A DNA stretch of 64,000 nucleotides from the NCBI GenBank assembly GCA_946965045.2, contig OX337229.1, forward strand, positions 4,774,001 through 4,838,000, in the 5' to 3' direction. Under the pieces are notes generated by a model. That model searched no databases and had not been told where the DNA came from. It saw nothing but the letters and a program-made list of their open reading frames with translations. Below are positions 3,375 through 64,000 of this stretch, in pieces. Each line of letters opens with the position of its first letter. Position 1 is the first letter of the stretch. The position numbers were made by a program, and so were the translations under genes. This stretch comes from Epithemia pelagica. Lineage: Eukaryota; Protista; Bacillariophyta.

Positions 3375-3375
<1 letters not shown>

Positions 3376-3408: not shown

Positions 3409-3409
<1 letters not shown>

Positions 3410-3420
3410 CGTGATTCTAC

Positions 3421-7306: not shown

Positions 7307-7689
7307 TGCATGATTGATGATACAAGACAACCTGTACTTTGCCATGGATTCATCTAGACTAAAGTTACACGACAAACGGCGAACCCAGACAGAAAGCCAT
7401 ACTAGGTAGGAGTAGGTAGAGACATGGTGCAAGTATTCCTCACTCTTTGCTCCGACTATGGGCTCCGCACTAGACGGAGACACACATAGACTGCATAGAA
7501 GCTTCTGGCAACAACGTGAAACGTGACCCAATTTAGCCTTTCTAAGCGCGACCAGATTCGCAGCCGTCCATTCTCCGCAAACTGTCTTTCCCATTCTTTC
7601 CAGTTGTTCGACAAACGACCAAAGATCCATTGCGGCCACCACCGAAACACAACCGCAAGCAATCAACAAGCGTATATATCATCATCATC

Positions 7690-9898: not shown

Positions 9899-11640
9899 CT
9901 ACAAATCCGACGTCGTTGACGACATGGAGAAGGATGGCGCTCGCATAAAGGATGCGACTTGTGGATCCAATTCCGCCACAATGCTTTGCAATCGTGTCAT
10001 GATTTGAGTAAATTCCGGTCGCTGCGATACTTTGACATGCCACGCTTGTCGCAACAGCCGACACAGGTCTTGGGGCCATTGAGTGTCGAGGAGAGCGGGA
10101 CGATGATGTTGGACAAAGACCCGATCCAAAAACATATTGGTGGTATACAACCCAAAGGGAGGTTCCAATGCCAAAATGTACCACACCAGCATGGCCCAAC
10201 TGTAAACGTCAGCCTTGTGATTGTAGGGTTGGTATAAGCCCACCTCGGGTGCCATGTACCGTAGAGCACCGGTAAATCCCGTCAATAAGTAGGTATCGTC
10301 GTTCCTGTGGTCATTCTTTTTGCTGGTGTTATTGGAAGCTGTAGGAGTAGGAGTAGGATTAACATCTTCGTTTATCTCCTCACGGTCGTTGTCGTTGCCA
10401 TCCGAGGTGGTGTCGGCATTGCTGCTACTTGCCCTCGACAAAGACGACGACGACGACGGCCGATACTTGTCTTGTGGTCGTAATTCTCGAGCCAATCCAA
10501 AATCAAACAATTTGAGTTCTCCCGATGGTTTGGCAAAGCCGATATTGTCGGGTTTCAAATCTCGATAGACAATCCGTCGACTGTGCAAATACTGCAGGGC
10601 ATGGGCGACATCGTAGGCCACCAACAAGCGTTCCGTCCACAGGGCTGTGGCTTGATCTTGGGGTCGTCGACGTCGACCCAATCCAGTGACAAATCCCGTC
10701 AATCCTCGAGTGGCTCGATCCTGATGCATCCACGCTGTAAGACGGCGAGGTAAGGTTTCGTCCAAGTGTTCGACCACGACAAAGTAGGACGGCAGAAAGG
10801 TTGAGTCGTCATGAGGCATGCCATGCAACCGAATAATATGCGCATGATTCAAAGAGGCCAAGAATTTGGCTTCCAATACCAAATCCATCAACCCTCTCAA
10901 GTATGTGACACGATCGGTTTGAAACAAACTGGATTCAACTTCCTTCAAAACATACTTGGTCCCCTTGCGTGACCACACTCGTCGAGCCAACCATTCACGA
11001 GAGGCAGGGCCATTGTTGTTGTTGTTGTTACCGGAGGAACCAGTTTGGTTGTTGAGGTTGTTCGAAGAATTGTTCTGGTTGCCGGCACTACCATTTCTCC
11101 TACTGGACCGACTGGTAGAACTACTGCTGGATTGACGAAAGAACAACCGACGTTGTTTCTGGTGATTCATGTTGTTTGAATGGATTGAACCATTCTCACT
11201 GGATTCCTCATGGGTGGTTTCGATGTTGATGTCGTTTGTCTGGATGGAGGATGGTGATGCTTGCAAGTGAATGGATTGGATTTCTCGCACGACACCGTAG
11301 GTCCCCCGTCCAACGACACGACCCGTTCGAATTTCTAACCGATGCAACTTGGGAATACGACTGACGGGTGAAGAAGAAGATGACCCTGTCTCAAGGATGA
11401 TAACGATGATGATGACAGGAAATGGGATTGTTCCGTTTCCTCCGTCACCACTTGTTGGACCATTTGCAAAATGGTTTCCATGGAAGCATCTTGATAGGCT
11501 TGCGCGTCAATCTCCCAGGGACGCCGCCGACTACCAACAACCGATGTAGGATTCGTTGGATGATTGGGATCAGGTGACAAAGACGACGACGATATCAACG
11601 AGGATGACACCAAGGGCAAGGGTGGTGGAAGTGGCCCCAT
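9899..11640 (-). CDS. Ser/Thr protein kinase (diatom-expanded TKL-like type), with an apparent 1-bp frameshift near 11385
   Basis: Motifs GRGTYGVV, YVLKEV, YRDLKPDNIGF, LFDFGLAREL, TGALRYMAPEV and KADVYS are present. The kinase frame has no upstream ATG. The upstream frame (ATG 11640) supplies a plausible N-terminus if one G is added to the GGG run at 11384-11386. Confidence 0.85.
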
Positions 11641-12006
11641 GATTGGAGTCTCCCAATTGCGACTCGCAGCAATGCTCCTTGTGTCTTTCCCGCCGACTAT
11701 CTCCACCCTGAAGAAATCATTCCAGTATCGTTATCAATTATTACCAACAGCAACCAGAACGGAGAACGAGAAGGACAAACACAAACCAGACTTGAATAAA
11801 CTCTTCCCGTCCTCGTTGTCACAACAGAAATAATCCGAAGCCAGCAATGAGTGGGTCGCTCTTTTGTTAGTGGCGGATGAGTCGCTCTCTTTGTGTTCTT
11901 CGACGTCGAATCCGGGACTTACCGGTCATGAGTTCCTTGCCCAGTTTTTTCCGGTGCTGACGACGGAGCCAATCTAAATAAAAAAAGAAACACATCTTGT
12001 GAAACG

Positions 12007-14838
12007 ATGGCACCCTCGAAACGGCGTAAGGGGAAGCAAGCTGCATCGCGTGCGGCGTCGACGAGACATTCGGCTGCTGCGGCTGCCGCAGCCACAAGCA
12101 CGACGACCACCAGCCAACCAACGAGTACCACCAAGTCGTCCGAAGACCGTGGTGCCCATTCTCCCACCAGTACAACTACTACTTATCACAACAACAAGGA
12201 CCACCCGGGAGATCCAATGATTGTCCCCACGATGATTGCAGATGAAAATGATATCATCTTGACAAGTTCCAAGAGAAAAGGGGTGTACGAATGTGATGTT
12301 TGTCGTGGTGATATCAGTCAATCGCCACGAATTCGTTGTGCGGTGAACGAAGAATTTGATATTTGTTTGGATTGTTTTGTTTCCAAACTCGTCAATCCTT
12401 CTGCTTCGTCGTCGTCTTCCGCCAACAACAACAAAAAACCTACGCCCTTGAAACATGGATATCGAGTGTGTGATTCCACACGATTTCCAGTCTTTCCCAC
12501 CGCACGACAATGGTCCACCAAAGCCTTTGTTCAAAACGTGGCAGCAGCATCCACAACAACAACAACAACCGCACCACCGCTGCTTTCCCATGCTACCAGC
12601 AGCATCTCCATGGCTTCCAACAACAATGGGTCTGTATCGAATACAGAAACGGAGGGAGAGATTGTATCAACACCTCAGAAAAAGGTGACTCTGGAAACCG
12701 TAAACGAAACGACCAAAGAATCATCCATGGAGTCTTCCAGTGAAGAAGAAAAAGTAGAATCTGCACAAGAAGCTCCATCAAAAACCTCTGATACTGCTAT
12801 GGATGTGGATACTCCGATGGAAAACACACAAGAGTCATCCTCTCAAAAGGAACATCCCAAGACACTTGTTCCATCGGATCCCATGGTTGTTTCAACTCCT
12901 TCTTCCACGTCGGCTGCTGCTTCGACGACTAGTACGAGTGGAGGATATTTCTTTCGAGCCGATGATCCCAAACTTTATTGGACCGTCGAAGAAGATTTAC
13001 GGCTTTTGGAAGGCATTCAAAACCATGGATTGGGAAATTGGGTCGAAATTGCCGAAACCGTGGCGGGTCAAGGCAAAACTCCCAAGCGATGTATGGAGCG
13101 TTATCTGGACGATTACCTGGGACGGTATGGGCACATACTGCCCATGTATACATTGATTCCTCATGACGATTCCACAGAAGCGAGTGCTGCTGCTGTTGTG
13201 GAGGACTCCACCGGCACGGATGCAGCCGAAGGACAAGACAAGGACACTACTGCCGAGGAATCCAATGTCGGCGATTCCACCACCACCGCTAAGCCGTCCT
13301 CACAAGGCGGTGACACGGCGAGTGGAAAGAGCGCTACTAGTACTACGATTCCAGCAGGGAATACGATGGACGCCTCGTTGGCATCCTATATGGAGGATCT
13401 GCCACGGTCTTCCAAACGCAGGTCCACCCACTTTCGGTCGCCGGGGGGTTCCACTGTCTCGGGGTCCAATTTGGCAAGCCGCAAAAAGTACAAGGTAGTG
13501 CCCACCGAGACACTGGAAGGCTACGAGACGTATTGGCCCAATCCCTATTGTCCATCGACGCGATCGACGGTTGTTGTGCCAGGAACCGAGGTGGGTCGTG
13601 ACCAAATGTACAAAGCCGAGCAAGCCTACGTCAAGGCCATTAGTGCAGCACAATCCAAGAAGGAAGTGGATGCGATCCACAAGGAATGGGCCGAAACAAA
13701 ACTCAACAAGCCGTACGGTCCTTCTGTCTTGCCACCTCGACCCGAAGATGTGGAAACCATGTCAGGAGCGGAACTTGCGGGATTTATGCCGAGACGTGGT
13801 GACTTTGACATTGAATGGGATAATGACGCGGAAGAGACAATTGGAGATATGGAGTTCTTACCGACCGACTCGGAAGAGGACAGGCAATTAAAACTCAAAG
13901 TACTTGCAATCTACGATGCAAAACTGGACAAGAGAGAATCTCGAAAAAAGTTTATCATCAGTCGCAAACTGTGGGATTATCGGAGACTACATCAAGATTT
14001 TGAAGCTTTGCCTCGCGATGAACGGGATTTGGTTCTACGCATGCGACTTTTTGAAAGATTCCACACTCCACAGGAGCACAACATATTCATCGCTGATATT
14101 CTCAAAGCGAAGCGCCTTCGAAAGGAAATCGCCAAACTTCAAATGTACCGTCGGATTGGTATCCGGACACTTGTCGAAGCAGAAAAGTACGAGCTCGACA
14201 AACTTCGCCGACAGTTCCACAGCAAAGCGGCAAGTGCTACCAACCAAGGCAAAGAGGATTCTGGTAGTGGAACTGGAGCGAGCAATAAACCAGATGATGC
14301 AACGGCTTCCACATCGTTATGGAGACAGTATCGAACCAATGATCGGAGAGTGCGAAAAAGCGTGAATCGGGGCGTGTCGTTTGGAACCAAAGAAAAGGCG
14401 TTGACCACCGACTCAGCAGCCTTTGAAGCTGGAGCGACGACAAATGATCCCATGGATATTGACAACAATAACTCAGATCTAGTCATGAGACCGAGCGAGG
14501 ACGCTTCTACCACAACCACTGGCCCGAACCAAATTGACTTGACAAAAAAGCTGCCGTCCGCGAGGTCTGCTCTATCTCAACAAGAAATTGAACTCTGTGA
14601 AAAAGTTGGTTTGACGCACGATCAATATCGCGACATTAAAAGAGTGTTGATTCAAGAGTCACTGGAGGCTGGCTTACTCGATAAGGAAGGAGCAGGTTCA
14701 AGTCGTCGGTCCTTGATAAAAATGGATACTGTTCGAAGGGGGAATCTAATTGATTTCTTCTTGAGAGCAGGCTGGGTTTCTACCAGATTGAGCCATATTG
14801 CAAGAAGTTTGCCCCATTCCTCTCAGCCACAATCGTGA
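12007..14838 (+). CDS. ADA2: Transcriptional adaptor ADA2 (ZZ zinc finger, SANT/Myb, ADA2 middle domain, SWIRM)
   Basis: ZZ finger (CDVC...CLDC...HGYRV), SANT (WTVEEDLRLLEGIQNHGLGNWVEIAE), the ADA2 signature GFMPRRGDFDIEWDNDAE and a C-terminal SWIRM-like region (LSQQEIELC...IDFFLRAGW). Confidence 0.92.
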   Translation: MAPSKRRKGKQAASRAASTRHSAAAAAAATSTTTTSQPTSTTKSSEDRGAHSPTSTTTTYHNNKDHPGDPMIVPTMIADENDIILTSSKRKGVYECDVCRGDISQSPRIRCAVNEEFDICLDCFVSKLVNPSASSSSSANNNKKPTPLKHGYRVCDSTRFPVFPTARQWSTKAFVQNVAAASTTTTTTAPPLLSHATSSISMASNNNGSVSNTETEGEIVSTPQKKVTLETVNETTKESSMESSSEEEKVESAQEAPSKTSDTAMDVDTPMENTQESSSQKEHPKTLVPSDPMVVSTPSSTSAAASTTSTSGGYFFRADDPKLYWTVEEDLRLLEGIQNHGLGNWVEIAETVAGQGKTPKRCMERYLDDYLGRYGHILPMYTLIPHDDSTEASAAAVVEDSTGTDAAEGQDKDTTAEESNVGDSTTTAKPSSQGGDTASGKSATSTTIPAGNTMDASLASYMEDLPRSSKRRSTHFRSPGGSTVSGSNLASRKKYKVVPTETLEGYETYWPNPYCPSTRSTVVVPGTEVGRDQMYKAEQAYVKAISAAQSKKEVDAIHKEWAETKLNKPYGPSVLPPRPEDVETMSGAELAGFMPRRGDFDIEWDNDAEETIGDMEFLPTDSEEDRQLKLKVLAIYDAKLDKRESRKKFIISRKLWDYRRLHQDFEALPRDERDLVLRMRLFERFHTPQEHNIFIADILKAKRLRKEIAKLQMYRRIGIRTLVEAEKYELDKLRRQFHSKAASATNQGKEDSGSGTGASNKPDDATASTSLWRQYRTNDRRVRKSVNRGVSFGTKEKALTTDSAAFEAGATTNDPMDIDNNNSDLVMRPSEDASTTTTGPNQIDLTKKLPSARSALSQQEIELCEKVGLTHDQYRDIKRVLIQESLEAGLLDKEGAGSSRRSLIKMDTVRRGNLIDFFLRAGWVSTRLSHIARSLPHSSQPQS

Positions 14839-15135
14839 CCCTGTTAACTTCCTCTGACATTAATCTAGAAAGAAGTTTTGGGGTATTTCATAGTCGGTGT
14901 AAGAGCTAGATACTACTGCTCCTACTATCCTATCATACTCTGAAATAGGAGTACTACTCCTAGGAGTAGCTAGGTAGAGGAGATAGGGCCATACACGTGT
15001 GGGTGGTCCGCGGGAGGTCTGCCGACCAAGGACCCATCCGCCGAGCCACCCCGCAAAATCAAAAAGCCAACGTTACGGACGAAAATTGAGACGTGCTATA
15101 CACATATGAGTGTATTTGAAAAGGAAACTTGAAGA

Positions 15136-16363
15136 ATGATGTCCCCTTCGACATGGGCAACAAAGTCCTTATCGAATGGAAGAAACATATCCACGATTTT
15201 GATCCGCAGTCCGAGCGGCAGACTGCGGCAATATGGGCCAACAATAGCGCAGTTTGGAAAACACTACGGCACGGCCCGAGTCATGAAGAATTCTTCGTCG
15301 ACTTTTGTTCGTCTTTCGACATCTCACGGCAAAGAAACTGTCTTTTGCCGCTTCCAATCCGCGCATCGATCTTGTGTTCCTGGGATGTATCATCGCCAGT
15401 CAACTTCATTTCAACACCAGCATTTGGGGAGCGTTACACATCTCTCTTCGTTTTTTGGTGGCCGTTCGAACAGACCTCCATCGAACAATCGAGTGGCTCA
15501 GGGTGCGGGATTGTTAGGAGGTGCTATGCTTCTGTTTGGTAAAACCAAATATCTGTTGGCGGCCTTGAAGCTTACAAAAATGGCATCACTCGGGAGTATG
15601 GTTCTTACTATTGGTACCTATTCCATGTTTTTCGGTTGGCCCTACGCCGTTGGAATGGTAGGGTTAATTGCCGTGCATGAAGCAGGTCATGCTCTTGTTC
15701 TCCATCAAAAAGGTATTCCATTTTCTCCCGCGGTATTTGTTCCATTCGTAAGTTCGTTGTTAGATTCAATGTATCCTCAAATTACGATTACCAACTTTGC
15801 CTTTCTTTGCTGTTGAGCAGATGGGCGCTGTCATTGTGACAAAGGAGCTTCCTCGAGATGCTTGGGAGGATGCCGTAGTTGCATATGGAGGACCAGCTCT
15901 GGGATCTTTGGGAGCAGGGGTCGTCGCCATAGGAGCGCACATGACAGATTCGCAGCTTCTCTATGCGCTTGCCGATTTTGGCTTTATGATCAATTTGTTC
16001 AATCTTCTGCCACTCGGATCAATGGACGGTGGTCGAATTACAGGCGCCATCTCTCCCTATGCAGGTATAGCCGGCGTTGGGATGGGTGGTGCATTAGCGT
16101 ATACAGGTGCCATCGCAAACCCCATTTTCTATCTTGTTCTACTTTCGGGTACATACGAAACCTTCATGCGATTCTACGACAGTTCCCGTCTTCCCCCCAA
16201 CTACTACAATATTCCGTTTCAAAAAAGGGCCGCTATGACTGTTGGTTACTTTGGCTTGATTGCAGCGCTAGCCGCTGCAATGGATGCCAACAAAAGGTAC
16301 CGGAAGCCACCAGAACTCCTGATGAGAGAGCGAGAGATCGAGAAAACCTTTGATATGCGCTAG
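15136..16363 (+). CDS. Site-2-protease family (M50) zinc metalloprotease, 2 exons
   Basis: HEAGH zinc motif and NLFNLLPLGSMDGGRI (NxxPxxxxDG). A GT-AG intron at 15748-15820 joins VFVPF to MGAVI. Confidence 0.9.
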
Positions 16364-16409
16364 GAAAGATAATCATCAATATTGCCTTTATCAAATAGGT
16401 CAAATAAAT

Positions 16410-19400
16410 TCATACCCACGGCATCCATCCTGAGAACAACTGTACTAGATTCTCACTGCTGCTTGCCTCTGCGATCAGTTTGTGGACTTGGCCTTCAACA
16501 GACAAAGCCATCACTTGGGTTAGTTCCTCGTCCTCCTGGTCGGTGTGAGAATCTAACAACTGTTTCCCTGCTTTCAAGTTCTTATTCCGAAGGTTGTATA
16601 TCCCACGAAGACGCTCATCAATTACGTTGATTGAGCGCTTGGCTTCCCTAACGTGGCGGTGTTGTTCCTGACCCCATCGGGACGATTTTTGTTGTGATCG
16701 TGTTCGCTTCCACTCAATCACAGGGTCATTTATGAACGGTTCTAAAACAGAGAGCAGAGTGGTTGACTGTCTCCGTAAAGTTGACATGGCATCCTTTAGG
16801 CTTCCGGAAAATATCCCGTCGGTCCCACAAGGACCGAAAGCGTCAACGAGATTTGCGGTCAGACGAAAGGGAACAATTTCAGGCTTAGGTAGACTCAGCC
16901 CCTTGTCAAAGATGCAATCAAAATCGACATGAACAATCTCTCCAGATGATGTATCAACTAAAATGTTTCTGATGGGTGGCGAGTGAAAAAACGAAAAGGG
17001 AATCAGCAACGGAGAATGGTTGTGCGAATGTGGTAATGATAAACTTACTCTGCATGGCGATCCCCTAGCCCAATCACGTGACCAACAGCTGACCACGAGG
17101 CCGCACTTTGTGCAAAACGAGTCCTTGCTTCGTACCAGGCGTGGGGGTTAGGAAAGTTCTGGACAAACCACCAGAAAAGAAGCGGAGGATTGGGTTTCAA
17201 GCATAGATCCTCGAACAACAAAGCAGCACGTCGCAGATCACCCTGTGACACAAATACGTCTTGACATTTTTTCTCGAAGGTATGTTTCAGTGCGGGGTCT
17301 AGTCGACTAATCCGAGATCCTCGACGGCTACTGGAGGACGTCGGTGCCATGGGATTGTACGTGTCTCCTACGAGGTTTCGAAGGGATTTCGTATGTGCAA
17401 CCCATTCCAAAATACCAGTCTCTTCGGAGAGACAGGTTACTGCAAAAGTACGCAAACGGAGTCCTCTTTGAGACCGTTGACTCTGCTTTGTGCTGGACAA
17501 AAGCAATCTATTGATGACGTTGTTGAGATCTTGGACTCGTGCATCTTTCCTGAGATCTCCTGCCGCCTCTTGTTTGATGAGGAAATGCATCTCCCCGATG
17601 TCCGACTCTATCGGATCAGGGGTGGGATCAAAAACTTTAGAGGGATCCCAACTTGTCACGAAGGCTGTCACCTTTTTGGGTCTTGCTTTGGAAACCATCA
17701 CACGAATTCTTCGACACCATGCCCGCATCCGTGGAACCTGTGTAGAAAAAACGGTTGACGATTGGATCGTGCTATATTGCGTATGAGAGAGGCACAGAGC
17801 AGCTTGAACTGGCGGAATAAAAGCTGTCAGTGGAACTTCTCCTTGCCAAGGTTTCACGCTTAGTTCAGTTTTCCTCTGGTCTTTTATTTCATATCGGGCG
17901 AGGTCGTGGAGATGCTTGAAAAGTCCGACAGATGTTTGCAATAGCTTGTTCGTCACTTCGTTTTTCTGATTGATAAAGTCGTTACAGGAATCTGTAAAGA
18001 TTTTCTTTACGATTAACCTCCGTGTTTGGTCTTTTGAATGGACTTCAAAATTTTTCAACGAACAAGATGAGATAAGAACACTGCACGACAACAATATTCA
18101 GGAAAACTTACCTAACCATGCGAGGTGCCACATAGTTTGTTCAGGAAACTTTGTGAGGACTCGCCTTAGCATTTCACGAACTATATTTCTTGTATCCTGG
18201 TTCGGATGTGTTATCCGAGAAACGAGCTGAGCAATTGCAGAGTAAAACGCTTGGGCTGGGATACTTTTGAAGCTTTTCGCCATGAATTCATTCAGTGACG
18301 TCTGGGCCTCGTTACGACTTTTTTTCATGGTTCGTTTTTGGTCTTCAGTGGGAGCCTGTGTGTTCGCAGGTTCTTGGTTTTGAGGAAGGTCCTCCGTAAC
18401 GAACGTGAACTGGAACCACAGCGACAAAAGTCTTGGTAGGGCTTGGTAAAGATGCTTCAAGTCCAGCTTTAAAGCTTCTGCATAGTGCGATACAGCCAGC
18501 ACAAGGAACTTTTGGCATGTCTTGTCCAGGGATATAGTTTCATTCATAGATCCATCATCGTAGCCTGAGAAAGAATGTTTCGACGCGCGCCGCTGCAGAA
18601 GTGATGCCCGAGATCGCATTACTTCCTCTGCATATTTCGCATAGTGGAACTGCGCTTTCTCCCATTCAGGTGCTATGCAATGGATGAAACGAAAGCCACA
18701 AAGAATCTCATTTCCTCCTTTAAGCCCTGAAGCAATAGTCCATTTTAGTGATTTCAGAGCTGATCGAACGAAAACTTGGACAGCGTCATTTTCGTCGACT
18801 TTGTGTTTCCCGAAACCGATGACAGAGGCAACCCGGCGAGAGACTTCAGCCAAGGTCTCGTTCTTTTCCATTAAAGATAATTTTGCAATATCACCAAGAT
18901 CAAGAAGACGCAATGCTTCAGAGCTTTCACCTGTTTTGTGTTTCAGTTTTGCTCGTTCAAGACGGAGGGCAGAGATATCGGTTATACCGACTATGGATGT
19001 GCATGATCTAAACGCTTCATCAGCTCGAGCAAACGCATCCGCCGCAACATTGTGCGTCCCGCGATTACGCGCTCTCTTCCCAACTGAAAGAAACAATCTA
19101 CCCTCAGTTGCGGAATCCAGAGCCAGTCGGGAAAGAGCTAGCCTGACGTTAATCAGAGAAAGTGCGCTTTCAGGAGCAGCAACCTCAAGACTCCAGTTCC
19201 AGTCCTGCCGCAACGTAGAACTGATATTGTTGGAGCAGGTTCCGTCATCCAAATGACTTTGCAGGAAATCTTCCACCTCTTGAAGGCTTCGCAACCTAAC
19301 GATCTGTTCATAAGATCTTCTATAGCTGTCTCGTGACGCGACAGCCAACAGCTCTGTAACCGAATATCTTGCATCCCTTAAATGCCTCGACGCCAATGAC

Positions 19401-22400
19401 GACTGTTTGTTGTGGATTGCAACCAACGCCTTCCCGAGCGATAGATTGTAATTGCCGTCGAGATCAACCTCGTTTTCAAAGGTGAGGTCACGTACAATTT
19501 CCGACAGTTCCTCCCATTTTCCAAGTCGCCATGCCGCTTGGACAGCGTATGGTCCCAAGCTAGAGGAGGCTGACCCTTGCAGAGAAAACGCAAGTCCTTG
19601 AATCTGATTAAGAACACTCTCATATTGACCGAGTTCAAGGAGACATTGGAGTATCCCTCTTTGATGCAACGACTTCACGCAACTATCGTCTTCTGTCTGG
19701 AGTGCTCTCTCGTGTTCGTGCAAAGCGCCATTCCAATCATGTGAAGCAACTCTTTCTCTGATGATATCCGTGACATTTGTGCGCAAATGAGTTCTCGGTT
19801 TCGATGCTGTTAGGGCCGTCAACGTCTCATGGTCATCCAGAGACAAAAGCACTCCTTTCATGGGCTCATAACAGTCGTCTGGACATACACCAGCCGCTCT
19901 ACTTTCACAACCGAGCCCTTGATGTCTCGACACAGTAGGATTTCGAGATGATCCGAAAACGCTTTCAGCGACAGTGAACCTGGATGCCATTTCAAAAAGA
20001 CGCAACGACCGTGCGTTCATTCCTACCCTTGCTGCAGCGGATGCTTGCAATTTGTAAGGAATCTTCCTGAGGATATCTTCGATACGCATAGTTGACTGCT
20101 GTGGTGGCCAGGTCAACACACCATTAGTACTCTCCATCTTCGAACCGCCAGAATATCTTTCTTCGATGTCTTGTTCCAGCCAGTATTGAAAAGTCTCAAC
20201 GACAGTGAAGACAGCGCTTACGGCCATCTGCAGATCTCCACTTCTCATGCGTCCCTTATCCTCGTTGAGGGTTAGGACATCAATTATCTCACGGACTACA
20301 GTTTCGTGATCAACTGGATCACCGTAGCAAAGGCGGTCCAGGACCAGCAGAGGCAGTAAGAACTCAGCCACATTGGATGACTGAGTCCTAAACGCTGTTC
20401 GGCAGGCAAAAAATATTGCATTCCACGCATGATTTTGGCTTTTCTGTGATCTTGTCACCATGTGTCGGGACCAATTTGATATCCACGACAAATAAGAGAA
20501 AGATGTCGAGAAGAAGGGTGGTTGCTTTTGGGCATTGCTATCGCTCTGCTCATGAAATTCAGACTGCCAAAATGGGAGTACAATCTCAAGAACTCCAGCG
20601 TTAGCCAATTCATCAGAGAGCCACTTGTCCATGGAATGATCTTTCGAAGCAACTCCTTGTAACAAAACCAAAAGTTGCTGGATAGCATAGCCTATTTTGT
20701 GTTGGTCCGACGACGACGGAGCAGCACGTAGAGCCCAAACAAGCTCCGAAGTCACCAACTGTAACCCGTAGATATTCGGTTGAACTTTCCAAGGAGGCTT
20801 TTTTAATCTCCATAAATGGGAATCGTTTCCACTGTAGTCTTCAGAACCATGAGAAAGAACTGTATCGTTCAATCTATATTCAGCAATTGCTCCGATTTCT
20901 CCCAGACAAGAAGCTAACAGGAGTTTGTGGATTTGATTTGATTCCACGGCACACCTCGATAGAAGGCATTCGATAAGTTCTGTAATGATTCCACGGGATG
21001 TCTGTGCTTTTGCGACAGTCACAAATCGACTCGCCGATGTACCGGGTTCGTTCTCTATGAGCGAATAGAAAATCGCGCGGCTTTGGCGAATCACCGCAAT
21101 AAGATGCTGAAGGACTACTTGGCGGACACTTGCATCTTCATGAGAAACCAGCGCAATCATGCCGTCGAGTTGCCGGTGTAGAACATATTGCTTTTTCTGC
21201 ATATCCTTTTGAGCATCGTCTTCTGACGATATGCCATTTGTAGGTGAGGCTGTTCCTTCCGAGTCAAAACCAAGGCCGTGAGAACTGAAAGATACTTTTG
21301 CCTTTTCGAGATGTGGTAGCTGGAAAAGGAAGGATATTTCGGAAAAGAAGGGAGCCAAGCTTTTCCCTAGTTCGCCTTCTGATAGGAATCCGATGATCGA
21401 TAGTGCACGAGACTTTGTGCTCAACATGGAGTCCGTAAGTTCGGGGCGCTTCGAGTTTTTTGAGACATGAGGTTTAGGTTCGTCTTCGCTCAGAACCGGA
21501 AGTAGAGCTGCCACCATTGAAGCCAGATTCTCACCTGCGAGAGGGTTGTTAGAAAAAATGTATCTCTGAAATAAGTGGAAGTGATCCAAACGTACCAACA
21601 ATTTCAGCGTTAACTGAACTGACCAGCTTGACGAATTTTGACATGCATTGGACAGCTATTAGTCTGAGCTCTTCCAATCGCATGGACGAAACCGCCCCAA
21701 CACTCTTCTGTGCTATGGCTCCATTTACTGTGGCCATAACTTGTGGCAAGAATTGTGCAACGCCATCTGTCGCGTGTAAAAAATCGAGAATGTGGTTAAG
21801 GGAACGGAGATCCTCAATTTTTTCCCACATCTCCTTATTATGCCACCTGGACTGCACGACGTTGACCAAAAGGTACATAAAATGCGATGAAATCCAAGGG
21901 GAAGCTTCATTGTAATTGGGATTATCGGAAAGCTGGAGTTGACCAAAATGGCTCAGAAAGGATGGACTTTCCCTTGCCTTGGTCGCAAGCAGAAGCGCCC
22001 TTAATGCAAGCCGGGGATCACTCGATCGACCCAGCTCTTTGACGAAAATCTTAAGTATTAGCTGTTCTCTGCCGGACAGCATTGTTTGCAGATCTCGTTT
22101 GTCCTTCAGAACATCTTTCACGAGAAAAAGCAATTCGCGCTGGTTTGCGCGTTGAAATACGAGAGGGAGCATGCGTTCGACAATTTGCGGGGCTTGAGCT
22201 AGTAGATAGAGTTGATGATCCAATTCCTTCGTCCACAGTCGTTTTCCTTTCTTTCGCCGAAATGATCTATCACCCACATCCAAGTATGAGAGGAATGAAC
22301 TCCGTCTGGTATCTATTTTGCCGTCGACTTGCTTTTGCGCCAACTGGAAAAGTTTGAATCCCGCGACCAAACGTAATGCTTGGTAGTTCCTGTCCAGGAT

Positions 22401-55913: not shown

Positions 55914-56792
55914 TTATTTGTTCGTTTTCTGTTCGTCCTTATTCCCCCTGCGGACACCGCTTCCTTCATCTGATGCTGGTTTCGAACCACTACTCCGGTC
56001 CTTGCGGCTGACCGAGATGGCACCCCCGACGACGACGGCACGTTCTATTATGGTTGGTTGAATCGCTTCTTGTACGAGGAAACGAGCACAATCCATTTTG
56101 GCCAGATGACTCGTTGGATGATCATGATGTTTACGTTGTTGGACACACCACTCCCCCGTTGGTTTATCTGTTTCATTCAGCAAGACGGCTCGTACCACGA
56201 GACTTCGTATGTTTCTGGTGGGGTTCGTTAAGGAGTTGCTACTTTCTCGAAGGAAGTTGGTGAGGAGCATCTCGGCTGCTGATAGGTCTTGGTATTGCAT
56301 CCAACCAATGGTTCGAAAGTGACCTTGCAACCGTTTACCTTCATCGAGGGACCACTCGAGGGGTGGCCAGTCTTCTGATATGCCCACAGACGATAGCATC
56401 AAAATATGCTGGATGGGTAAAGAAGTCATGCTCTTCAATATGTTGGCCGTTCCCAGCTTGGCCGCAAAATCAGAGTTAAATGGGTTTCGATTGCCTAAAC
56501 AAGAAATGATTACATCGACTCCAGCCAAATGTGGTGTTAGGGAGTCCTTGCAGACATCAATTTTCCGAAGAACGAGGCGTTGTCGTTGTATATGCATAGG
56601 AATATCATCATCGGGACAGAGCAGTCCATGTTTGTTGGGGCATCCACAGGACCAGTTGGCCTCATTCAACTTTTCAATGTTTTTGGAAAAGACTCGAATC
56701 TCTCCGAGCACCTCTACAGGCATTGCCAGAGCTGCCTCCACTACATGTCTTCCAACGTCTCCCAAGTCGCCCGTGCTAAAAAAGATGGCCAT
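55914..56792 (-). CDS. Atypical SDR / NAD(P)H-binding protein (flavin reductase-like)
   Basis: N-terminal Rossmann motif STGDLGDVGRHVV, then AGVDVIISCLG, LSSVGI..., YQDLSAAE and LVVRAVLL...D.ARFLV. Confidence 0.75.
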   Translation of the reverse strand: MAIFFSTGDLGDVGRHVVEAALAMPVEVLGEIRVFSKNIEKLNEANWSCGCPNKHGLLCPDDDIPMHIQRQRLVLRKIDVCKDSLTPHLAGVDVIISCLGNRNPFNSDFAAKLGTANILKSMTSLPIQHILMLSSVGISEDWPPLEWSLDEGKRLQGHFRTIGWMQYQDLSAAEMLLTNFLRESSNSLTNPTRNIRSLVVRAVLLNETDKPTGEWCVQQRKHHDHPTSHLAKMDCARFLVQEAIQPTIIERAVVVGGAISVSRKDRSSGSKPASDEGSGVRRGNKDEQKTNK

Positions 56793-57170
56793 GATTATGC
56801 TATTGGGATCCCTATCGAAGCCATGACCTCCACTACCAAATTCACGATGGCCTACAACTGTGCCTTCATCATGATGGTGATGATAAGTCATGATGGCATG
56901 TTATGACGGTTCCTAAACACTCTGCGACTGGGTTGGTTGTTTTTGAGATTGTGTTCTCGATTCCCTTTGCGAGGTTCTCGTTATTTGTTATGAGTAATTG
57001 GCGCCTTTCGTTGTTTGTTGTTTGTAGACGAAGTTTGCTGCAACTTCCGGTAAATACACGTCAGTCGCATATTCTGTACCAATACCCAACGGACGAAACC
57101 AAAAAGTAGGATCGATATTATTACAAAGCACGTATTATGATTCCATAGAATATGGTTGGAACAAACGGGA

Positions 57171-57255
57171 ATGTCGCTTGGTATGTCGTTTGGTATGTCG
57201 TTTGATGTCGTTTGATGTCGTTTGGTATGTCGTTTGATGTCGTTTGATGTCGTTT
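57171..57255 (+). repeat. Tandem array of 8 ATGTCG-core units (10-12 bp period; GATGTCGTTT / GTATGTCGTTTG)
   Basis: Cores read directly at about 57171, 57183, 57195, 57205, 57215, 57227, 57237 and 57247. Confidence 0.92.
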
Positions 57256-57410
57256 CGGGCTCGCGCGGAAACATGGTTTGATTCAAAATCCAGCGGTGCT
57301 CTTTCAGTAGATGGGCCTACTGTCTACTGTCAATCATTGACTTGTGACCGTGTGATTTCTCTTGATGGCCTGCAACTGCTGGAGAGTAAAGAATTTTTTT
57401 GGCGATAAAA

Positions 57411-57502
57411 ACATCCGACATCCTCCGACATCATCCGACATCCTCCGACATCATCCGACATCCTCCGACATCATCCGACATCTCCCAAATCCTCCGACAT
57501 CC
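57411..57502 (-). repeat. Tandem array of 8 CGACAT-core decamers (alternating TCCTCCGACA/TCATCCGACA), inverted relative to the first array
   Basis: CGACAT occurs at 57416, 57426, 57436, 57446, 57456, 57466, 57476 and 57495, and is the reverse complement of ATGTCG. Confidence 0.92.
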
Positions 57503-58358
57503 GTGACTCCGTGTGCTTACCTCATATTTAAGGAATCTTAGTCTAGTATGATCATATCAGAGGTACTACTGTATGATAATGAAGAAGTTATATCGTGAGG
57601 ATACTCTGAGTAGTAGAAAGATTACCCACGTTTTGAGTCCATTACCGGAAGTTGCTGGAGTAACACGTTCGTTCATGATGATGTGCGGTATTGGACTGGT
57701 TCGGTAGTTTGTAGTTTGGGCTTTGCTGTCATCCGATTCGTCGAAATCAAAGCAACGAGAATCCTTTGCGAATGTTCAAGCAATCAGAAACTGCATTGAA
57801 CGTGATCATTTATGCCAAGTCATTTCTCTTAAATCTTAGACTCGAATCGGATAGATGGTGGATGTCCTTGCATTAAACGCAACTTTTGTAGGAGAACAGC
57901 CAGTCATAACAGAGCACGGGGCACTTATGCGGGACACAAGTGTGTAAAAATTCCAAATTCTAGAGGTGGCCCCTCGGTAAGCGGACGCGCAGCTCCAGCG
58001 CTGGAGAAACTCCAGCAGAGATTTTCTGTTGCTGGAAAGGTAAGCACGTAAGCGCTACATTGGCTGCGACTGCAACTTCCGGTAACTTCACGTGAGTCGC
58101 ATATTCTATCCCAATACCCAACGGACGAAACCAAAACGAAGGATCGATATTAAAGCAAAGTACGAACTATGATACCATAGAATATGATTTGCCATTCTCT
58201 AGTACGGAACAACCTTTGATTGCCCACCCGAAGGGTGGGTCACTGGCGATCACCGAAACCGCGACCTATGAGACACCGATGTATTTTCAAAACCCCCCCA
58301 CTTTTTCAGAATTTTTCCACTATAGGTATATTTGTACTAATGTATGTGTCAGTGACGC

Positions 58359-58823
58359 TTATTCTTTTTCCAGTTGGGCGAGACGTTCTTCCAACCAATC
58401 CATCCTCACACTCATCTTTTTCAGAGCAGTCGCCAATTCCTCTACTTCACCACTCGGAAGTTCGCTGTCCTTGGTCTCCTTGGTCTTGTTTGTAGTTTTC
58501 GTCGTACGCGTCCATTCCGAGCTCGGCACTCTTTCCGACGGGTCCCTAACAAACTGATTCCGATAGCCCGCAATCCGACACACTCCATTCCGTTCGGCCC
58601 ACAACTGATACTGTAGGTCGTTTTTGAGATGTTCAGGAGCGTCTTGTTCGTCGTAATGCTTGAGGTTCTTAGGTAGGAATGAACCATGCGCGTTCTTCGG
58701 GAACGTGACTGTAACTCTTGGCCAGGTCCTCTGTGGGTCTTGTACCTTAGTGACATACCCACACAGTCCTTTTCTAATCCCCGTGAGTGGTACGACGAGA
58801 TCTCCTAATGCGAATTGCACCAT
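58359..58823 (-). CDS. Element-borne orphan protein: KOW/SH3-like N-terminus plus C-terminal coiled coil
   Basis: Intact 154-aa ORF starting at ATG. FALGDLVVPLTGIRKGLCGYVTKV fits the KOW pattern (GDxVxVxxGxxKGxxGxV). EVEELATALKKMSVRMDWLEERLAQLEKE shows heptad periodicity. Confidence 0.6.
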   Translation of the reverse strand: MVQFALGDLVVPLTGIRKGLCGYVTKVQDPQRTWPRVTVTFPKNAHGSFLPKNLKHYDEQDAPEHLKNDLQYQLWAERNGVCRIAGYRNQFVRDPSERVPSSEWTRTTKTTNKTKETKDSELPSGEVEELATALKKMSVRMDWLEERLAQLEKE

Positions 58824-59083
58824 TGTTTCGTTGCGTTGCGTTTTGTTTGTTTGTTGTGTGTCCGATTGCCTCTTTTCCTTCTACTCCCTACACCTACTTC
58901 CTATTCATACATATAGATACATAGGATACAACAACGCCAGTAGTGCCGCGCCATGAATTCAAATCAGTGCAAACCGTTTTGAAACATGGCGCGACTTGCC
59001 GACTTTTTTGCTTTTGTTATAGTCGTTCTCAGTTTTTTTGTTGGATTGTTGTGTTGTTGTAGTTGTTATTCCTACTTTAAGCA

Positions 59084-59863
59084 ATGGCCTATCCGCATCA
59101 CCCCAACCCCGATGGCGATACGGCTGTGTTCCGTGTCGACGTTTCCGGCACAGGCGAAAACATTGTCCGAATCCGTGCCGCCATGGACATCATCCTGCCG
59201 AAGTGTGGTGTTGCACCAAGAGATTTGGTCAAAATCTCCTACCGCCATACTCCTCTTCTTTCCGGTTTCAAGTATGACAGTACCATTGACTGCAAGGCCC
59301 CGGTTTACAATGGGTTGGTCCTACAAGGTGCTGTTTTGCGCTCGGTAGCACCGCCAGGGTTCTGGCAAGTGGAACTTCCCCCCGAAAAAAGGTTTTTGGA
59401 TCGTTGTATTACTGTCACACTTTACTATCTAACGTACATTGGCGGTTTCAAAATTTCGTCGCAGAAGGTGCAGTGTGGCTATTTATTTATTATCGAGAAT
59501 GGATGGACGGAAGACTGGGATGACGTGGGCGTATCCACGATCTCCATCACCCAACCAGTCCCTGGTCTGACATCATCGGAACTCCGACAAATTCCTAACG
59601 CGACTGCACGCAACCAGATGGAAATGGTTACGGAAGAAGATGGGTACGACGTAGACTCCGATGGAGAACCTGCCGCTCAGGAGCTCGTACTACGGTACAC
59701 ATGGGCCAACTCTACTCCCGAACGCCGCCCAACCCAGATGCAGTTGCTGGAACATACCCTTACTAAGCCTCGTCCGCAGGGGTATGTTCCCAAACGTCTT
59801 ATGATTGTGGAAAGGAAGCCTAAGAACGACGACAATGACAACAAGAACAATAATGCAGCGTAA
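59084..59863 (+). CDS. Element-borne hypothetical protein (259 aa, beta-rich), no recognised family
   Basis: Intact ATG-to-TAA ORF with protein-like composition. It is divergent from the KOW ORF and convergent with the recombinase. Confidence 0.6.
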   Translation: MAYPHHPNPDGDTAVFRVDVSGTGENIVRIRAAMDIILPKCGVAPRDLVKISYRHTPLLSGFKYDSTIDCKAPVYNGLVLQGAVLRSVAPPGFWQVELPPEKRFLDRCITVTLYYLTYIGGFKISSQKVQCGYLFIIENGWTEDWDDVGVSTISITQPVPGLTSSELRQIPNATARNQMEMVTEEDGYDVDSDGEPAAQELVLRYTWANSTPERRPTQMQLLEHTLTKPRPQGYVPKRLMIVERKPKNDDNDNKNNNAA

Positions 59864-60036
59864 CCTATTCTAGAAATGAGTTGAGAGTTCCAAATTTCAA
59901 TTGTAAACTAGTAGTTAATATAGAAAAAAGACTGGCCCACCACCACCCACCCAGCACTGGACCATTCCCCAGTGTCATCACTCACCAGGGCCATGTCCAG
60001 AACCAGGCGCCCAGCCTTGGTATTGTTGCGTCTTCT

Positions 60037-62445
60037 TTATCTTTTGCATATGCATTTGTATGACACTCTGTTAATTTTCTCCATTGAACCAAAGAAAGCC
60101 ACCCTATCACCATTGTAACACTCGCCAATACACTTTTCCACTCGTCCCACGCTCGTCCTGATTCTCTTGAGCCACTGGTAATCTCTTGGAACGAACCCCT
60201 TATTCTTGCCCTTGTACTTCGACACCACCTCCTTCATCTTCTCATAGACATCCTCATTTGAACCATCAAACCCAGTCAGTTCCACACGGTCATCATCCAA
60301 TGCCACTTGGTGCTCCACAGGTCCAGCTCGTTGCTCTTCTCTTGTCAAGTTCCTTTGTTTCTTCTTTTGTCGTTGTCTTTCTGCGTCGTCTTCTTCGTCC
60401 CTTCCACGTACCTTTTCCGGTGTCACTAAGGCCATTCCATTATTTGTTGTTGTCTGCTGCTGTAGCTCCACTGCCTCTGCTGCCTCTGCCGCTTCCAGGT
60501 CCAAACTCTTTTTGAAGCACTCGGAAAATAGACGAGATGCTTCCAACCTTGTTTGGTCGTCTGGAAATCGGTGAAATAGATGGCGAAGTTGTTCGAATGG
60601 TGTTTCGTCTCCTTTTTTACCAAGGGAAAGTTGGTAAATTTCCGACCAATGATAATCGGATTGACAATCTAGCGCGTCCCTTACGTACCAATCAGCCAAC
60701 TCCGTTATAGATAAGGACGTCCGAGTGCTGGCATTTTGATTTTTTCTGTTGAATTTTCCAGACGAATAAAAAACCGATTTCCATGGCGAGACTTTGTATT
60801 CCGGCCAACATTGTGGGCGATGGAATCCAGAGTCTTCCCATTGGCTGAGACAATTTTGATAATACAGTGAAGCTTGTTGTAGTGTCCCATGCCTCGCTGA
60901 TTTATTCAGGGCGTCATCTTCTAGAGGCTGTAGTCCCAATCCTGGTTGGCCCATGTCTGTGCGACGTCTTCCAGTACTCTCATATCGATACAGAATGCCA
61001 AAAATAGCATACATGTATCCAGTTTTGCGAAGAGTATGCGTCCCAACAGTACATTGGGAAGGGTCAAAATCCGAATTCGATCCAGAAAATTGAAAGACTA
61101 AAACTTTCTGTGAAAAAAAACAGTACGGTAAGCGATGTCTCACTGGTAAGTTTATTCGCAGGTGAATAAACTTACCTTAATTTCTTTTAATAACCTGCGA
61201 TACGGATATTCTTTGGTTGACCAGTTATCCGGTAGGGATTTACCATCGACATGTGCCTGGAGTAATTCGGGTCGGGGGAAAAGATAGGGCCCAGGAAGTT
61301 TCGCGGCTGCAAGATAGACCAAAAGGGCGCGAACCGGGCAAAACTCTGGGTTTTCGTCATCCCGATATAAAGACAAGCACTGTTCCACTTTGTCGGCCTT
61401 GCCCAATACCCAGAGTACTATTTGGTCCACACGTTTCTCTTTCCGAAGCACAACGAAACATTCCTTCCGGAACTGGGATAGACGAAGCGAACAAACTTCT
61501 TGTGCCCTTAGGAAAAGGTGAATACCGACCAACATCATGCACCATAATTGCATATTCATGATGTCGTTCGATCTAGAAAGTAGATGTGCCCTTACCTGAC
61601 GAAGCTGTTTCGTTGTTATATGTAACGCACCACGGATGTAATGGTTCGCGCGCAAATGGTTCTGGACCCGGTTAAACATTGAAATGCAGAGTTTGTGGTA
61701 CGTTGGACAGCCACGTGGACGTAAGCGAGGATACATACATCCCCCACAGTTGAGGAACTCCCTGTCTTCCGAACAGGCCCAGTTAATTTGACCTTTTGCT
61801 TCATTTTTTTTATGCACTTTTCACACGTGCCGATATAGGCGAGTGACATGTCTTCCAAGCAAAAGGAGTTATGTAGTGTACGAATAGCAACGCGACATTT
61901 TTGTACATTTGTTGGGTCGGACCAACCGTTTTTCTTGACAATACGCCCGTTACGCTCCACACTGTCACACGAACCGGTAACAATCTTGCCAGCACGAGTG
62001 CCGTGCACGTACACGACACAATTATTATTGAAATCAACGACGTTGGTCAAACGGTCGAATGATTTATACTGGTAGAATAACGCCAGTGTCACAGGATTCG
62101 CAGGTAGGGGATTCTTCGGACGAAGCTTGTCATTGCAGATGGTCGCAGTTCGCATGTCATCCAACAAATACGCAAATCGACCCAATTCACGCCAATAACG
62201 CGGATACTCACGGAGTGATTTATCTTCGCCATTGGACGAACCGCGAAGTTGGAAGCGGACTGTGTATTGGAAGTCGATCTCTGGAGGAGTCATGGCCTCC
62301 TCTGCTATATAGCTTTAATTAGACTCTCCATTTCGATTTCCTCCTCTTTCGATAGCTTCGTAGCCACCACTTCGCCTTCCTTGCGAGGACGAAAGTGAGT
62401 TTCCACGAGTTCAACTGTTGTTGCTGCGGTTGCTTCGCTAGTCAT
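60037..62445 (-). pseudogene. Tyrosine recombinase (Crypton-type), one intron, two frame disruptions
   Basis: The catalytic set is intact: R (LFLRAQE, 61508), K (LGKAD), HxxR (GTHTLRKTG, 61038-61027), H (SARH, 60891) and Y (LYY, 60864-60859). A GT-AG intron spans 61175-61108 (phase 0, EIK|KVL). The frame breaks at the A8 run (about 61804-61811) and at a TATATA near 62308. The probable original start is ATG 62445. Confidence 0.85.
61145..61176. other. Perfect 13-6-13 palindrome overlapping the recombinase intron 5' splice site
   Basis: GGTAAGTTTATTC-GCAGGT-GAATAAACTTACC; the two arms are exact reverse complements. Confidence 0.9.
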
Positions 62446-62780
62446 TGTCTTTTCTAGTTTTGATAGGATGTAGATAGGATCAAATGACTTTTTATGATTG
62501 TTACAACTCATTAGAAGTGTTTGATTGTTGAAAAGGAGATCTTTTTGCCATGGATGTGTCAGAGGTCGTCTACAAGACGATCATTGGGAAGTTCGGAAGT
62601 GGTGGGGCTATAAATTCATGCCAAGGATGGCACGGTATCCGCGATTCAACGGAGATTAAATCGTGTTGGGTCACTGGTTGGTTCACTGTTGGGTCAGTGT
62701 TGGGTTATAGGTATTTTTATAGCGTCAACTGTAGTGTCTTACGCGATATTTTACTATATATACTAAGAGAACAAACGGGA

Positions 62781-62863
62781 ATGTCGAAAGGTATGTCGTT
62801 CGATGTCGAAAGGTATGTCGTTTGATGTCGTTTGATGTTGTTTGATGTCGTTTGATGTCGTTT
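62781..62863 (+). repeat. Second copy of the ATGTCG array (8 units, one degenerate ATGTTG) in element B
   Basis: Cores at about 62781, 62793, 62803, 62815, 62825, 62835 (variant), 62845 and 62855. Confidence 0.9.
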
Positions 62864-63429
62864 CGGGCTCGCGCGCAAACATGGTTTGCCTCAAAATCCA
62901 GCGGTTTTCATTCAGTTGATGGGTCAACCGTCAATGATTGACTCGTAACGTTGTGATTTCTCTTAAAGAACTTCAACTGCTGGAGAGTACATATTCTTTT
63001 GGCGATAAAAACATCCGACATCCTACTTCCCATTAGACGTCCACAAAATACTGTACAGACACACAGACTAATCCCGAACTCTAATACATCTTGTGTGTGA
63101 CACGTGTAGATCTAGGCTGGCTTGACCTGAGTGATCAACCGTCACAAGTTGAAGGCTTGAGCGTTAGATCGTTGTACTCCCAAGATTCTTTTTTCATGAA
63201 AAACTCACCCACGAAACACAGCAGAACAGAGTCCACATGGCCACTCAATATCAGTAGTTGAAATCACCCAAAACTGTTCTCCAACTACCAATTCTTTGAC
63301 TAGCCATAACTTTTGAACGGTACGTACCCAGACTTGCGGTCCTGGCCCATTCGAAAGTTCGTGACGAGACGGTTCTAACGAGCTATTGGATTCTTCTCTC
63401 GCACATTCAGAACGAAAGTTATTGTCACC

Positions 63430-64000
63430 TCAACATTGGGTGTCCTGAATTCTGCCTGGCGAGTTTTCAATTCTTTGACTAGTCTTTATATCTGTTAGGA
63501 AACGTTGAATTTTCCATCGTAATTCTCTTGAAAGAAACTTGCAAACATTTCTGGAATGAATATAGGCCAGTAGTAATGACTTTGATGTAATCAATTCGTC
63601 TTGAGTCTCGCAATACCTGGGGTACATGAAAGTATAACACCACTGTTTGACAGTGTAGCAAAAGAGTTTGTACTCCCGACTATAGTTTGTATCAATTGCA
63701 TTACCAAAAGAGCAATGCCGTGACCAACCTTTATGGATGATGTGCCATCCACATTGAAGACGAACACAATTTGGCATGAATCGTCTACAAGCTTCTTCAA
63801 CTTCGGTGATTTCATGCGAATCTCCATCAGTGATTATTGCTTTTATCTCATTAACCCATTCCCCACCAAGAAGCTTTGGCAAAGCCCAGGAGAAAACCCA
63901 TCAAAATGTTGCTTGTTTTTGATCACGCAAGAACATTCGTAGTATAATGATGTATTTTCCAAAGGATGTGCGAATTGAGGCCGTTAGAAGAGGTCTAGAT
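63430..64000 (-). pseudogene. Decayed Mutator-like (MULE) transposase fragment, continuing past the right edge of the window
   Basis: Reads RPLLTASIRTSFGKYIIILRMFLRDQKQATF*WVFSWALPKLLG...IITDGD...CGWHIIHKGW, giving the MULE D and CxxH motifs. There is an in-frame TGA at 63903-63901 and similarity is lost after RFLTD. Confidence 0.75.

Follow-up and report, generated by a model that had tools for sequence, protein, structure and literature searches.

A 64,000-nucleotide stretch of the genome of the diatom Epithemia pelagica (assembly GCA_946965045.2, contig OX337229.1, positions 4,774,001 to 4,838,000 of the forward strand; henceforth the window, with positions counted from its first letter) holds two neighbouring elements that share the same inverted termini: a short element A and a longer element B, whose interior encodes a tyrosine recombinase (YR). 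Do the terminal inverted repeats (TIRs), the subterminal repeat arrays and the recombinase belong to one transposon, or to several that have come to lie within each other? An earlier note, made from the sequence alone, had favoured the former, describing B as a new kind of YR transposon with its own TIRs, arrays and mini-derivative, and had named as the alternative a plain Crypton that sits within a TIR element unrelated to it. Here, we use additional copies of the interior, an allele lacking it, and an extension of the contig to show that the YR element is young and separately mobile and lies in its TIR-bearing surroundings by chance. The locus is very probably a stack of three independent transposons: a miniature inverted-repeat transposable element (MITE), a Crypton, and a Mutator-like element (MULE).

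Boundaries and empty allele of the Crypton

The interior of B is a Crypton-type YR transposon of 4567 bp on the minus strand (58207..62773), bounded by the direct repeat GAACA at 58207-58211 and 62769-62773; read in the sense of the YR gene, it runs from TGTTCTCTTAG to AAGGTTGTTC. Exact look-ups of its three products, the YR and the proteins of a 259-aa and a 154-aa open reading frame (ORF), led to four further contigs in the ENA assembly ERZ21939226, from which the loci were fetched. All four carry the interior at 98.6-99.7% identity to the window, and the BLASTN overlap is limited to 58206/7-62773/81, with flanks that are unrelated to one another and to the window. Every copy starts with GAACAACCTTTGATTGCCC and finishes with CTAAGAGAACA, which amounts to a 5-bp terminal direct repeat; GAACA stands at both ends in four copies, and the target-side copy is GAGCA at locus L004. 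At the equivalent position, element A contains one GAACA (GGTTGGAACAAACGGG). The shared segment, its GAACA ends and the unrelated flanks therefore identify the interior as a separate mobile element that inserted at the GAACA of an A-type copy.

None of the features that would tie the recombinase to the surrounding repeats travels with it. The 13-bp inverted terminus of A and B is absent from all four further loci when up to one mismatch is allowed, and the two matches with two mismatches (L002 position 2776 and L004 position 20295) lie far from the elements. Arrays of the 10-bp units are missing at these loci as well, where isolated single matches occur. Nor are the two ends of the Crypton inverted copies of each other: aligning its first 150 bp to its last 150 bp in reverse complement gave a score of 8, where shuffled sequence averaged 9.3. 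TIRs and arrays are missing from four of the five YR copies, as well as from three copies of a distant relative described below, at odds with the proposal that ends, arrays and YR always co-occur. Copies with other boundaries and without these ends, which the earlier note had listed as the outcome contradicting its proposal, turn up four times, and the TIRs, arrays and neighbouring mini-element are not the YR element's own. One of the copies, at L003, is itself interrupted (11639-20025) by a Copia-type retrotransposon of about 8.4 kb with a 1895-aa ORF containing an RVT_2 domain.

An empty site in another haplotype, for which the earlier note had suggested a search, exists for the copy at L004. 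This insertion is heterozygous: it is present on ctg1342l (L004/L009) and missing from ctg1269l (L008), the assembly holding allelic haplotigs. The flanks of L004 and L008 are 99.4-99.5% identical in two alignments that overlap by 9 bp. The empty site reads CAGACAGAGAGCAA followed by AGAGGAC, with AGAGAGCAA present once, and the filled junctions read AGAGAGCAA followed by CCTTTG and AAGAGAACAA followed by AGAGGAC. The target AGAGAGCAA and the element junction AGAGAACAA are alike at 8/9 positions. Apart from the element itself, no bases were gained, duplicated or lost, and the single mismatch keeps to its parental side. Such precise junctions with a mismatch retained on the parental side are what one expects when a circularised element recombines conservatively and site-specifically with a target that resembles its own junction. 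Integration of the Crypton is precise and conservative, and it takes place at a 5-bp GAACA-type core. Both the boundaries of the copies and the empty allele agree with a plain Crypton nested in an unrelated TIR element, and the heterozygous insertion, together with copies that differ by less than 1.5%, indicates that the family was active recently; it appears to be active in this diatom genome.

In Goodwin's model, Cryptons integrate by site-specific recombination of a circle with its target (see PMC3212892, PMC13465315), and such integration has been observed for the active CryptonF-1_cRei of Chlamydomonas, whose CACCG ends enter CAYCG targets (PMC9977147). The likeness is close in that the 5-bp terminal repeat mirrors the target in both cases (GAACA and GARCA here, CACCG and CAYCG there), whereas for the window element we infer excision. 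Its roughly 800-aa recombinase would most likely excise the Crypton as a circle, and the circle junction ...AAGGT-TGTTC-TCTTAG... would then recombine with a genomic site whose 5-bp core is identical or almost so. Once inserted, the Crypton is flanked by one element-derived and one target-derived core; the L004/L008 pair shows no true target duplication, and inverted repeats are lacking. Natural pairs of empty and filled alleles are known for few Crypton families, and the pair described here adds direct sequence evidence for Goodwin's model.

A pair of old MITEs and what inserted into one of them

The TIRs and arrays belong to an old non-autonomous MITE of about 600 bp that is present twice, as element A and as a shell around the Crypton in B. 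Element A (57041..57654, plus strand) is an insertion-free unit with, as first described, perfect 13-bp inverted termini, CAACTTCCGGTAA and TTACCGGAAGTTG (14 bp with a flanking G); it is a complete non-autonomous TIR element of about 614 bp, flanked by CTG at 57038-57040 and 57655-57657. The exact 13-mer CAACTTCCGGTAA has three sites in the window, namely the left and right ends of A and the left end of B (58073). Two arrays lie inside A, both listed on the plus strand: a left one (57173..57255) of 10-12-bp units (GGT)ATGTCGTTTG, and a right one (57411..57500) of 10-bp units CATCCGACAT or CCTCCGACAT, the core GATGTCG of which is inverted relative to the left array.

The second copy of this MITE family has been split into three parts, all on the plus strand where they fall in the window. 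Its left part (58073..58206) begins with the TIR at 58073-58085, preceded by CTG at 58070-58072. Its middle part (62774..63024) is homologous to A 57162-57424 and takes in the left array together with the beginning of the right one. Its right part, which corresponds to A 401-614 at 88% identity, lies beyond the window at window-equivalent 65470-65685 and ends in TTACCGGAAGTTG followed by CTG; the right TIR was recovered about 1.7 kb past the window end by extending the contig (locus L005, where a coordinate equals the window coordinate minus 49083). Identity to A is 87% for B 58073-58189 against the left ~117 bp of A, 84% for B 62769-63024 against A 119-384 (BLAST E 1e-75), and about 88% over the reconstituted shell (517/585 ungapped columns). 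The match between A and the blocks of B that had been noticed earlier is real, but it is one of about 88% identity and not of equality, and at this divergence A and the B shell are old copies.

The break at 63024 had been taken for the end of element B. It is caused by an insertion of about 2.4 kb that resembles a MULE: on the minus strand, it starts in the window (63025..64000) and runs to window-equivalent ~65469 (L005 16386). Its imperfect TIRs of about 56 bp start with TCCCATTA, its insertion point at 63024/63025 falls within the right array of the MITE that forms the B shell, and its flanks form a roughly 8-9-bp imperfect repeat (ATCCTACT and ATTCCTCT). A 450-aa ORF gives a borderline match to ZSWIM1-3_RNaseH-like (27.0 bits against a cut-off of 27.2). 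This element entered the same MITE copy as the Crypton, either before or after it.

Which superfamily the MITEs belong to can be judged from an element of similar design. A PIF/Harbinger element of about 5.6 kb at locus L006 of the same genome (~2204-7797, ctg1353l) splits a sister of the window Crypton inside a CCCAACACTGACCCAAC motif; the pre-insertion sequence CCCAACACTGACCCAAC can be deduced from the interrupted repeated motif. It encodes a DDE_Tnp_4 ORF (3627-4529, minus strand), ends in a 12-bp TIR (GGACACCCAGGA), is flanked by CTG on both sides, and carries arrays of 10-bp GTGGA(T/C)GTTT units near both ends. Its TIR differs from that of the MITEs, and CTG flanks and 10-bp arrays are common to both. 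A 3-bp duplication is a hallmark of PIF/Harbinger transposons (PMC2213677). Because the L006 element combines the same design with a 3-bp duplication, we read A and the B shell, each with CTG on both flanks, as probable Harbinger-type MITEs in which CTG would be the target duplication and which a DDE transposase would most likely have moved in trans. They resemble Tourist-like and other PIF/Harbinger MITEs in their short TIRs, 3-bp flanking duplication, non-coding sequence and length of about 600 bp, and in subterminal short repeats like those of the DDE_Tnp_4 element; the duplication is CTG instead of the usual TWA.

It is unlikely, though not remotely so, that the two copies are MITEs of another superfamily, such as hAT or Mutator, with CTG flanks that either belong to the element itself or agree by coincidence. 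The flanks of B are alike over 9 bp with one mismatch (CTGCGACTG and CTGTGACTG) and could be read as a 9-bp duplication, and the lack of a matching autonomous partner leaves room for such an origin. However, the 8/9 agreement at B has no equivalent at A, whose flanks agree over CTG alone, and we rejected the 9-bp duplication on these grounds. CTG on both sides in both copies, the DDE_Tnp_4 element with the same flanks and array architecture in the same genome, and the association of 3-bp duplications with PIF/Harbinger (PMC2213677) further argue for Harbinger-type MITEs.

Could B nevertheless move as a unit, a TIR element that has captured a Crypton and is mobilised with it by a DDE transposase? 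Such a composite has a precedent in MarCry-1_FO of Fusarium oxysporum, in which a Crypton and a Mariner-type element are joined and which has 16-bp TIRs and TA duplications (PMC3212892), and both TIRs and CTG flanks of B are intact. We nonetheless regard propagation of B in this form as very improbable: of the five YR copies, a single one is enclosed by a shell, the unit would measure about 7.6 kb with the MULE, and a second composite copy is not on record, while MarCry-1_FO exists as several composites of more than 97% identity with TA duplications. With one in five Crypton copies nested, the likeness of a Crypton between the TIRs of a DDE-type element is superficial.

Hardly anything speaks for a new YR family with the 13-bp termini and arrays as att-like sites, in which B would be the autonomous member and A its MITE-like deletion derivative: A and the B shell do have ends and arrays in common, and the interior encodes a YR, but the four further YR copies and the three of a distant relative are bounded precisely by TGTTC/GAACA and lack these ends, the empty allele fixes the YR boundaries, the ages do not match because shell copies are about 12% diverged and YR copies less than 1.5%, and the shell is also interrupted by the MULE, as expected of passive old DNA. 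What looks like a YR transposon with TIRs and a MITE partner is an artefact of nesting and does not merit a class of its own in annotation. Equally remote is the idea that the interior is a remnant of a YR retroelement (DIRS-, Ngaro- or PAT-like) or a segmental duplication and not a DNA transposon, since, although DIRS-like elements with a different YR occur in the same genome (L007 11441-14855), it has no reverse transcriptase (RT) or RNase H and no split or inverted long repeats, its nucleotide-precise boundaries are identical in all copies, the filled minus the empty allele is exactly the element, and the intron retained in the YR gene is unfit for copying via spliced RNA.

The recombinase and its accompanying reading frames

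The three ORFs reported for the interior were all recovered. The YR gene occupies the minus strand in two exons: exon 1 (62511-61176) encodes a Cys-rich N-terminal region followed by LFLRAQE, with the catalytic R and E, and the VLGK lysine; a 68-nt GT..AG intron (61108..61175) splits the catalytic domain; and exon 2 (61107-60037) encodes HxxR (GTHTLRKT), ARH, the catalytic Y (ASLYY), a conserved NKVSxW block and a C-terminal Cys/His motif. The spliced product of about 800 aa is colinear with an annotated protein of Epithemia clementina (P0026) and a UniRef protein of Grammatophora oceanica (P0040). LFLRAQE, V(L/K)GK, GTHTLRKT, ARH and ASLYY are conserved across the family and together supply the R-E-K-HxxR-H-Y set. 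The spacings between R and E and between H and Y match those of Cre (R173/E176 and W315/Y324).

The earlier note had described the catalytic residues as intact. They and the intron are in place, but the gene itself is not intact: the window copy is frameshifted upstream of the catalytic domain by two 1-nt deletions relative to intact copies, at 61804-61811 (8 A instead of 9) and at 62314-62316 (3 A instead of 4). The YR genes at L002 and L004 are intact, with an uninterrupted 453-aa exon-1 frame, and one of the two deletions is also present at L001. A programmed -1 frameshift at the A-run was considered and rejected because other copies are uninterrupted with one more A. If the frameshifts are real, the window copy would depend for its mobility on recombinase from intact copies at other loci.

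For the fold we relied on P0026, which is 49-55% identical to the YRs of the window family. An AF2 model of its catalytic region (residues 1-345) reached a pLDDT of 85.7 and a pTM of 0.83, and its top 50 PDB matches in Foldseek are all tyrosine recombinases or type IB topoisomerases, led by XerH (E 1.9e-3, probability 1.00) and Ndc10 (probability 0.98) and followed by Flp, Tn1549 Int, Cre and lambda Int. As modelled on this homologue, the interior gene product is a tyrosine recombinase with a predicted Cre/Xer/Ndc10-like fold. A full-length AF2 model of the distant relative P0045 was poor in its catalytic half (pLDDT 67.7) and gave YR-enriched but non-significant matches, and the domain model was used instead. 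Profile searches of the PDB with the YR alignments returned no match.

The family is small. A word-indexed search found nine proteins, and phmmer found 33 relatives among 1.84 billion representatives; the few with a nameable source come from diatoms or metagenomes. Scans of all ORFs and the 33 family members against Pfam, NCBIfam and PHROGs gave no significant family. Collections of viral, metagenome and prokaryotic genomes scanned with narrow YR peptide patterns yielded no relatives, which is a weak negative.

The 154-aa ORF (58359..58823, minus strand) has a KOW-like N-terminus and a C-terminus that is predicted to be helical. For the earlier description as a KOW/coiled-coil protein, the KOW part receives weak backing from a profile of the family, the best PDB match of which is the KOW protein ribosomal protein L24 (E 0.043). 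The 259-aa ORF (59084..59863, plus strand) had been called an orphan, and it indeed has no relatives outside its own genome, or beyond its own cluster. Both ORFs are intact in all five Crypton copies. The sister element at L006, with a YR 66-68% identical to that of the window family, has both in the same order and orientation; its version of the 154-aa ORF is 43-48% identical, and that of the 259-aa ORF (38-42%) is broken. The two are candidate element-borne accessory genes, and the case that they are functional rests mainly on this conservation in a diverged sister. In L007 the analogous position holds a 256-aa ORF, which was tried as a counterpart of the 259-aa ORF and rejected, as it is unrelated and part of a DIRS-like element.

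The Crypton also carries short repeated motifs of its own. Three tandem copies of CAGTGACCCAAC (62665..62699, minus strand) lie 75-109 bp from the YR-proximal end, and a single copy, CAGTGACCCACC (58234..58245, minus strand), lies 28 bp from the other element end, where it overlaps the palindrome CCCACCCGAAGGGTGGG (58223-58239). The four occurrences compare with 0.34 expected, all have the same orientation, and they are kept at the same places in L006. With CAGTGACCCAAC at both ends, iterated subterminal sites are thus a feature of the Crypton too, distinct from those that were noticed at first. The recombinase or an accessory protein probably binds to them. The motifs and accessory ORFs are candidates for directionality control in eukaryotic YR transposons. 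A second short sequence, TATAGGTAT(A/T)TTT(G/A)TA, stands in direct orientation near both Crypton ends (window 58321-58336 and 62706-62721); it may be another cis site or chance.

Several points weigh against the picture drawn here. For the Crypton, the circular intermediate is something we infer, the Foldseek E-values of the P0026 model are modest, and Pfam does not recognise the recombinase, a sub-threshold NDC10_II match appearing in one member alone. Differences in the accessory ORFs among near-identical copies are mostly non-synonymous (7:2 and 6:3 non-synonymous to synonymous). For the MITE, the PIF/Harbinger label is most likely right but draws on analogy, the copies number two, and an autonomous partner with CAACTTCCGGTAA ends was not found, no DNA search of the whole assembly having been made. 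Finally, the two MITE copies do not agree exactly at the Crypton site: the 4 nt described earlier as simply added between the blocks of A are GTTG (57153-57156) where B has 20 nt (ATTTGCCATTCTCTAGTACG, 58187-58206), and GAACA comes next in both. This difference could be an old indel between the MITE copies or filler DNA from the insertion.

Relation to known Cryptons and the wider locus

Cryptons are characterised by terminal direct repeats of 4-6 bp and the absence of TIRs (PMC3212892). With its GAACA direct repeat, its lack of inverted repeats, its YR motifs and the Cre/Xer/Ndc10-like model of its homologue, the window element is therefore a Crypton in the standard sense, and all testable Crypton-defining features are present. 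No ORF in 58207-62773 matches an RT, RNase H or DDE transposase in Pfam, NCBIfam or PHROGs, nor, in agreement with the earlier note, a polB or capsid gene, and the earlier reading of the interior as a YR-only DNA transposon of the Crypton kind with extra ORFs stands. Like described Cryptons (Goodwin et al. 2003; Kojima & Jurka 2011, PMC3212892), it is a YR-only DNA transposon without TIRs or long terminal repeats that has a low copy number and integrates conservatively. It differs from them in a recombinase that lies outside the Pfam models and combines a long N-terminal region rich in Cys with a Cys/His motif at its C-terminus, and in two ORFs that are unrelated to the accessories reported so far (C48 peptidase, helix-turn-helix, and the DDE transposase in MarCry).

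The nearest comparison by host is CryptonS-1_PTri of the diatom Phaeodactylum tricornutum (PMC3212892), which also has short terminal direct repeats and is similar in size (4671 bp, 4567 bp here) and copy number (four, five here). Its termini are CTGTAAG (7 bp) and not GAACA, and its printed YR motifs HSxKRS ... RAGW ... Y differ from GTHTLRKT ... ARH ... ASLYY. More generally, the terminal repeat GAACA/TGTTC fits CryptonS in length (5 bp, against 5-6 bp there) but not in sequence (TATGG in most of its families), and the printed motifs of CryS1_PTri and oomycete CryptonS (HSxRRG ... RGGW ... Y) differ by eye from those of the window YR family. Starships, including Enterprise (PMC10104507, PMC8092012), are further removed: they measure tens to hundreds of kb instead of 4.6 kb and have a DUF3435 YR and possible TIRs, as opposed to a different YR lineage and no TIRs here. 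What remains is mildly new, namely a divergent Crypton family, restricted to diatoms and apparently active of late, with two conserved accessory ORFs and a conserved subterminal motif.

Distant relatives extend this comparison. P0045 is an intronless YR of 795 aa, 31% identical to the window family, encoded in a single-gene metagenomic element of 3235 bp that occurs at ~100% identity in three different flanks (L013 520-3754, L014 3960-7194 and L015 44-3278); the protein is recorded on 23 contigs of several metagenome assemblies. All three element copies lack TIRs. Their ends are TGTTCTCTACTATAGATAG...GCTGTTC, with TGTTC repeats and TGGTC in one 3' copy, and comparison with the window Crypton in YR orientation (TGTTCTCTTAGTATATATAG...GGTTGTTC) shows that the TGTTC core is identical and the 5' terminus alike. 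Even very distant members of the family thus keep the core and the terminus next to it. On this basis one may tentatively envisage an undescribed Crypton superfamily of diatoms and their relatives, somewhat against the odds, in which the TGTTC core and 5' terminus persist at ~30% YR identity, the YRs bear Cys-rich N- and C-terminal modules, and a sub-lineage has accessories and CAGTGACCCAAC sites. If this reading is true, it would describe a eukaryotic transposon equipped with a small recombination module of the lambda type that, as the heterozygous insertion suggests, is currently active.

A third Crypton relative, with a YR 51% identical, is found at L007. Directly downstream of it (11441-14855) lies what looks like a DIRS-like retroelement: a 522-aa ORF with other YR-like motifs (ALRGEE, HSFRRG, RW, ERY) stands beside a 666-aa ORF that has an RNase H-like motif by eye and no Pfam match at E 0.01.

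Rfam gave no match anywhere in the window. The host's ribosomal protein S11e shares a 90%-identity cluster with its Epithemia clementina counterpart. On the left side of the locus, a minus-strand host gene encoding an NAD(P)H-binding protein (NAD_binding_10; window 55914-56891) ends about 150 bp upstream of A, so that the MITE sits in gene-proximal intergenic DNA. On the right side, just downstream of the stack, small ORFs at L005 18936-19386 (window-equivalent ~68019-68469), one with a hAT dimerisation domain (Dimer_Tnp_hAT), suggest a further degraded DNA transposon, so that the locus as a whole is a transposon-rich patch.

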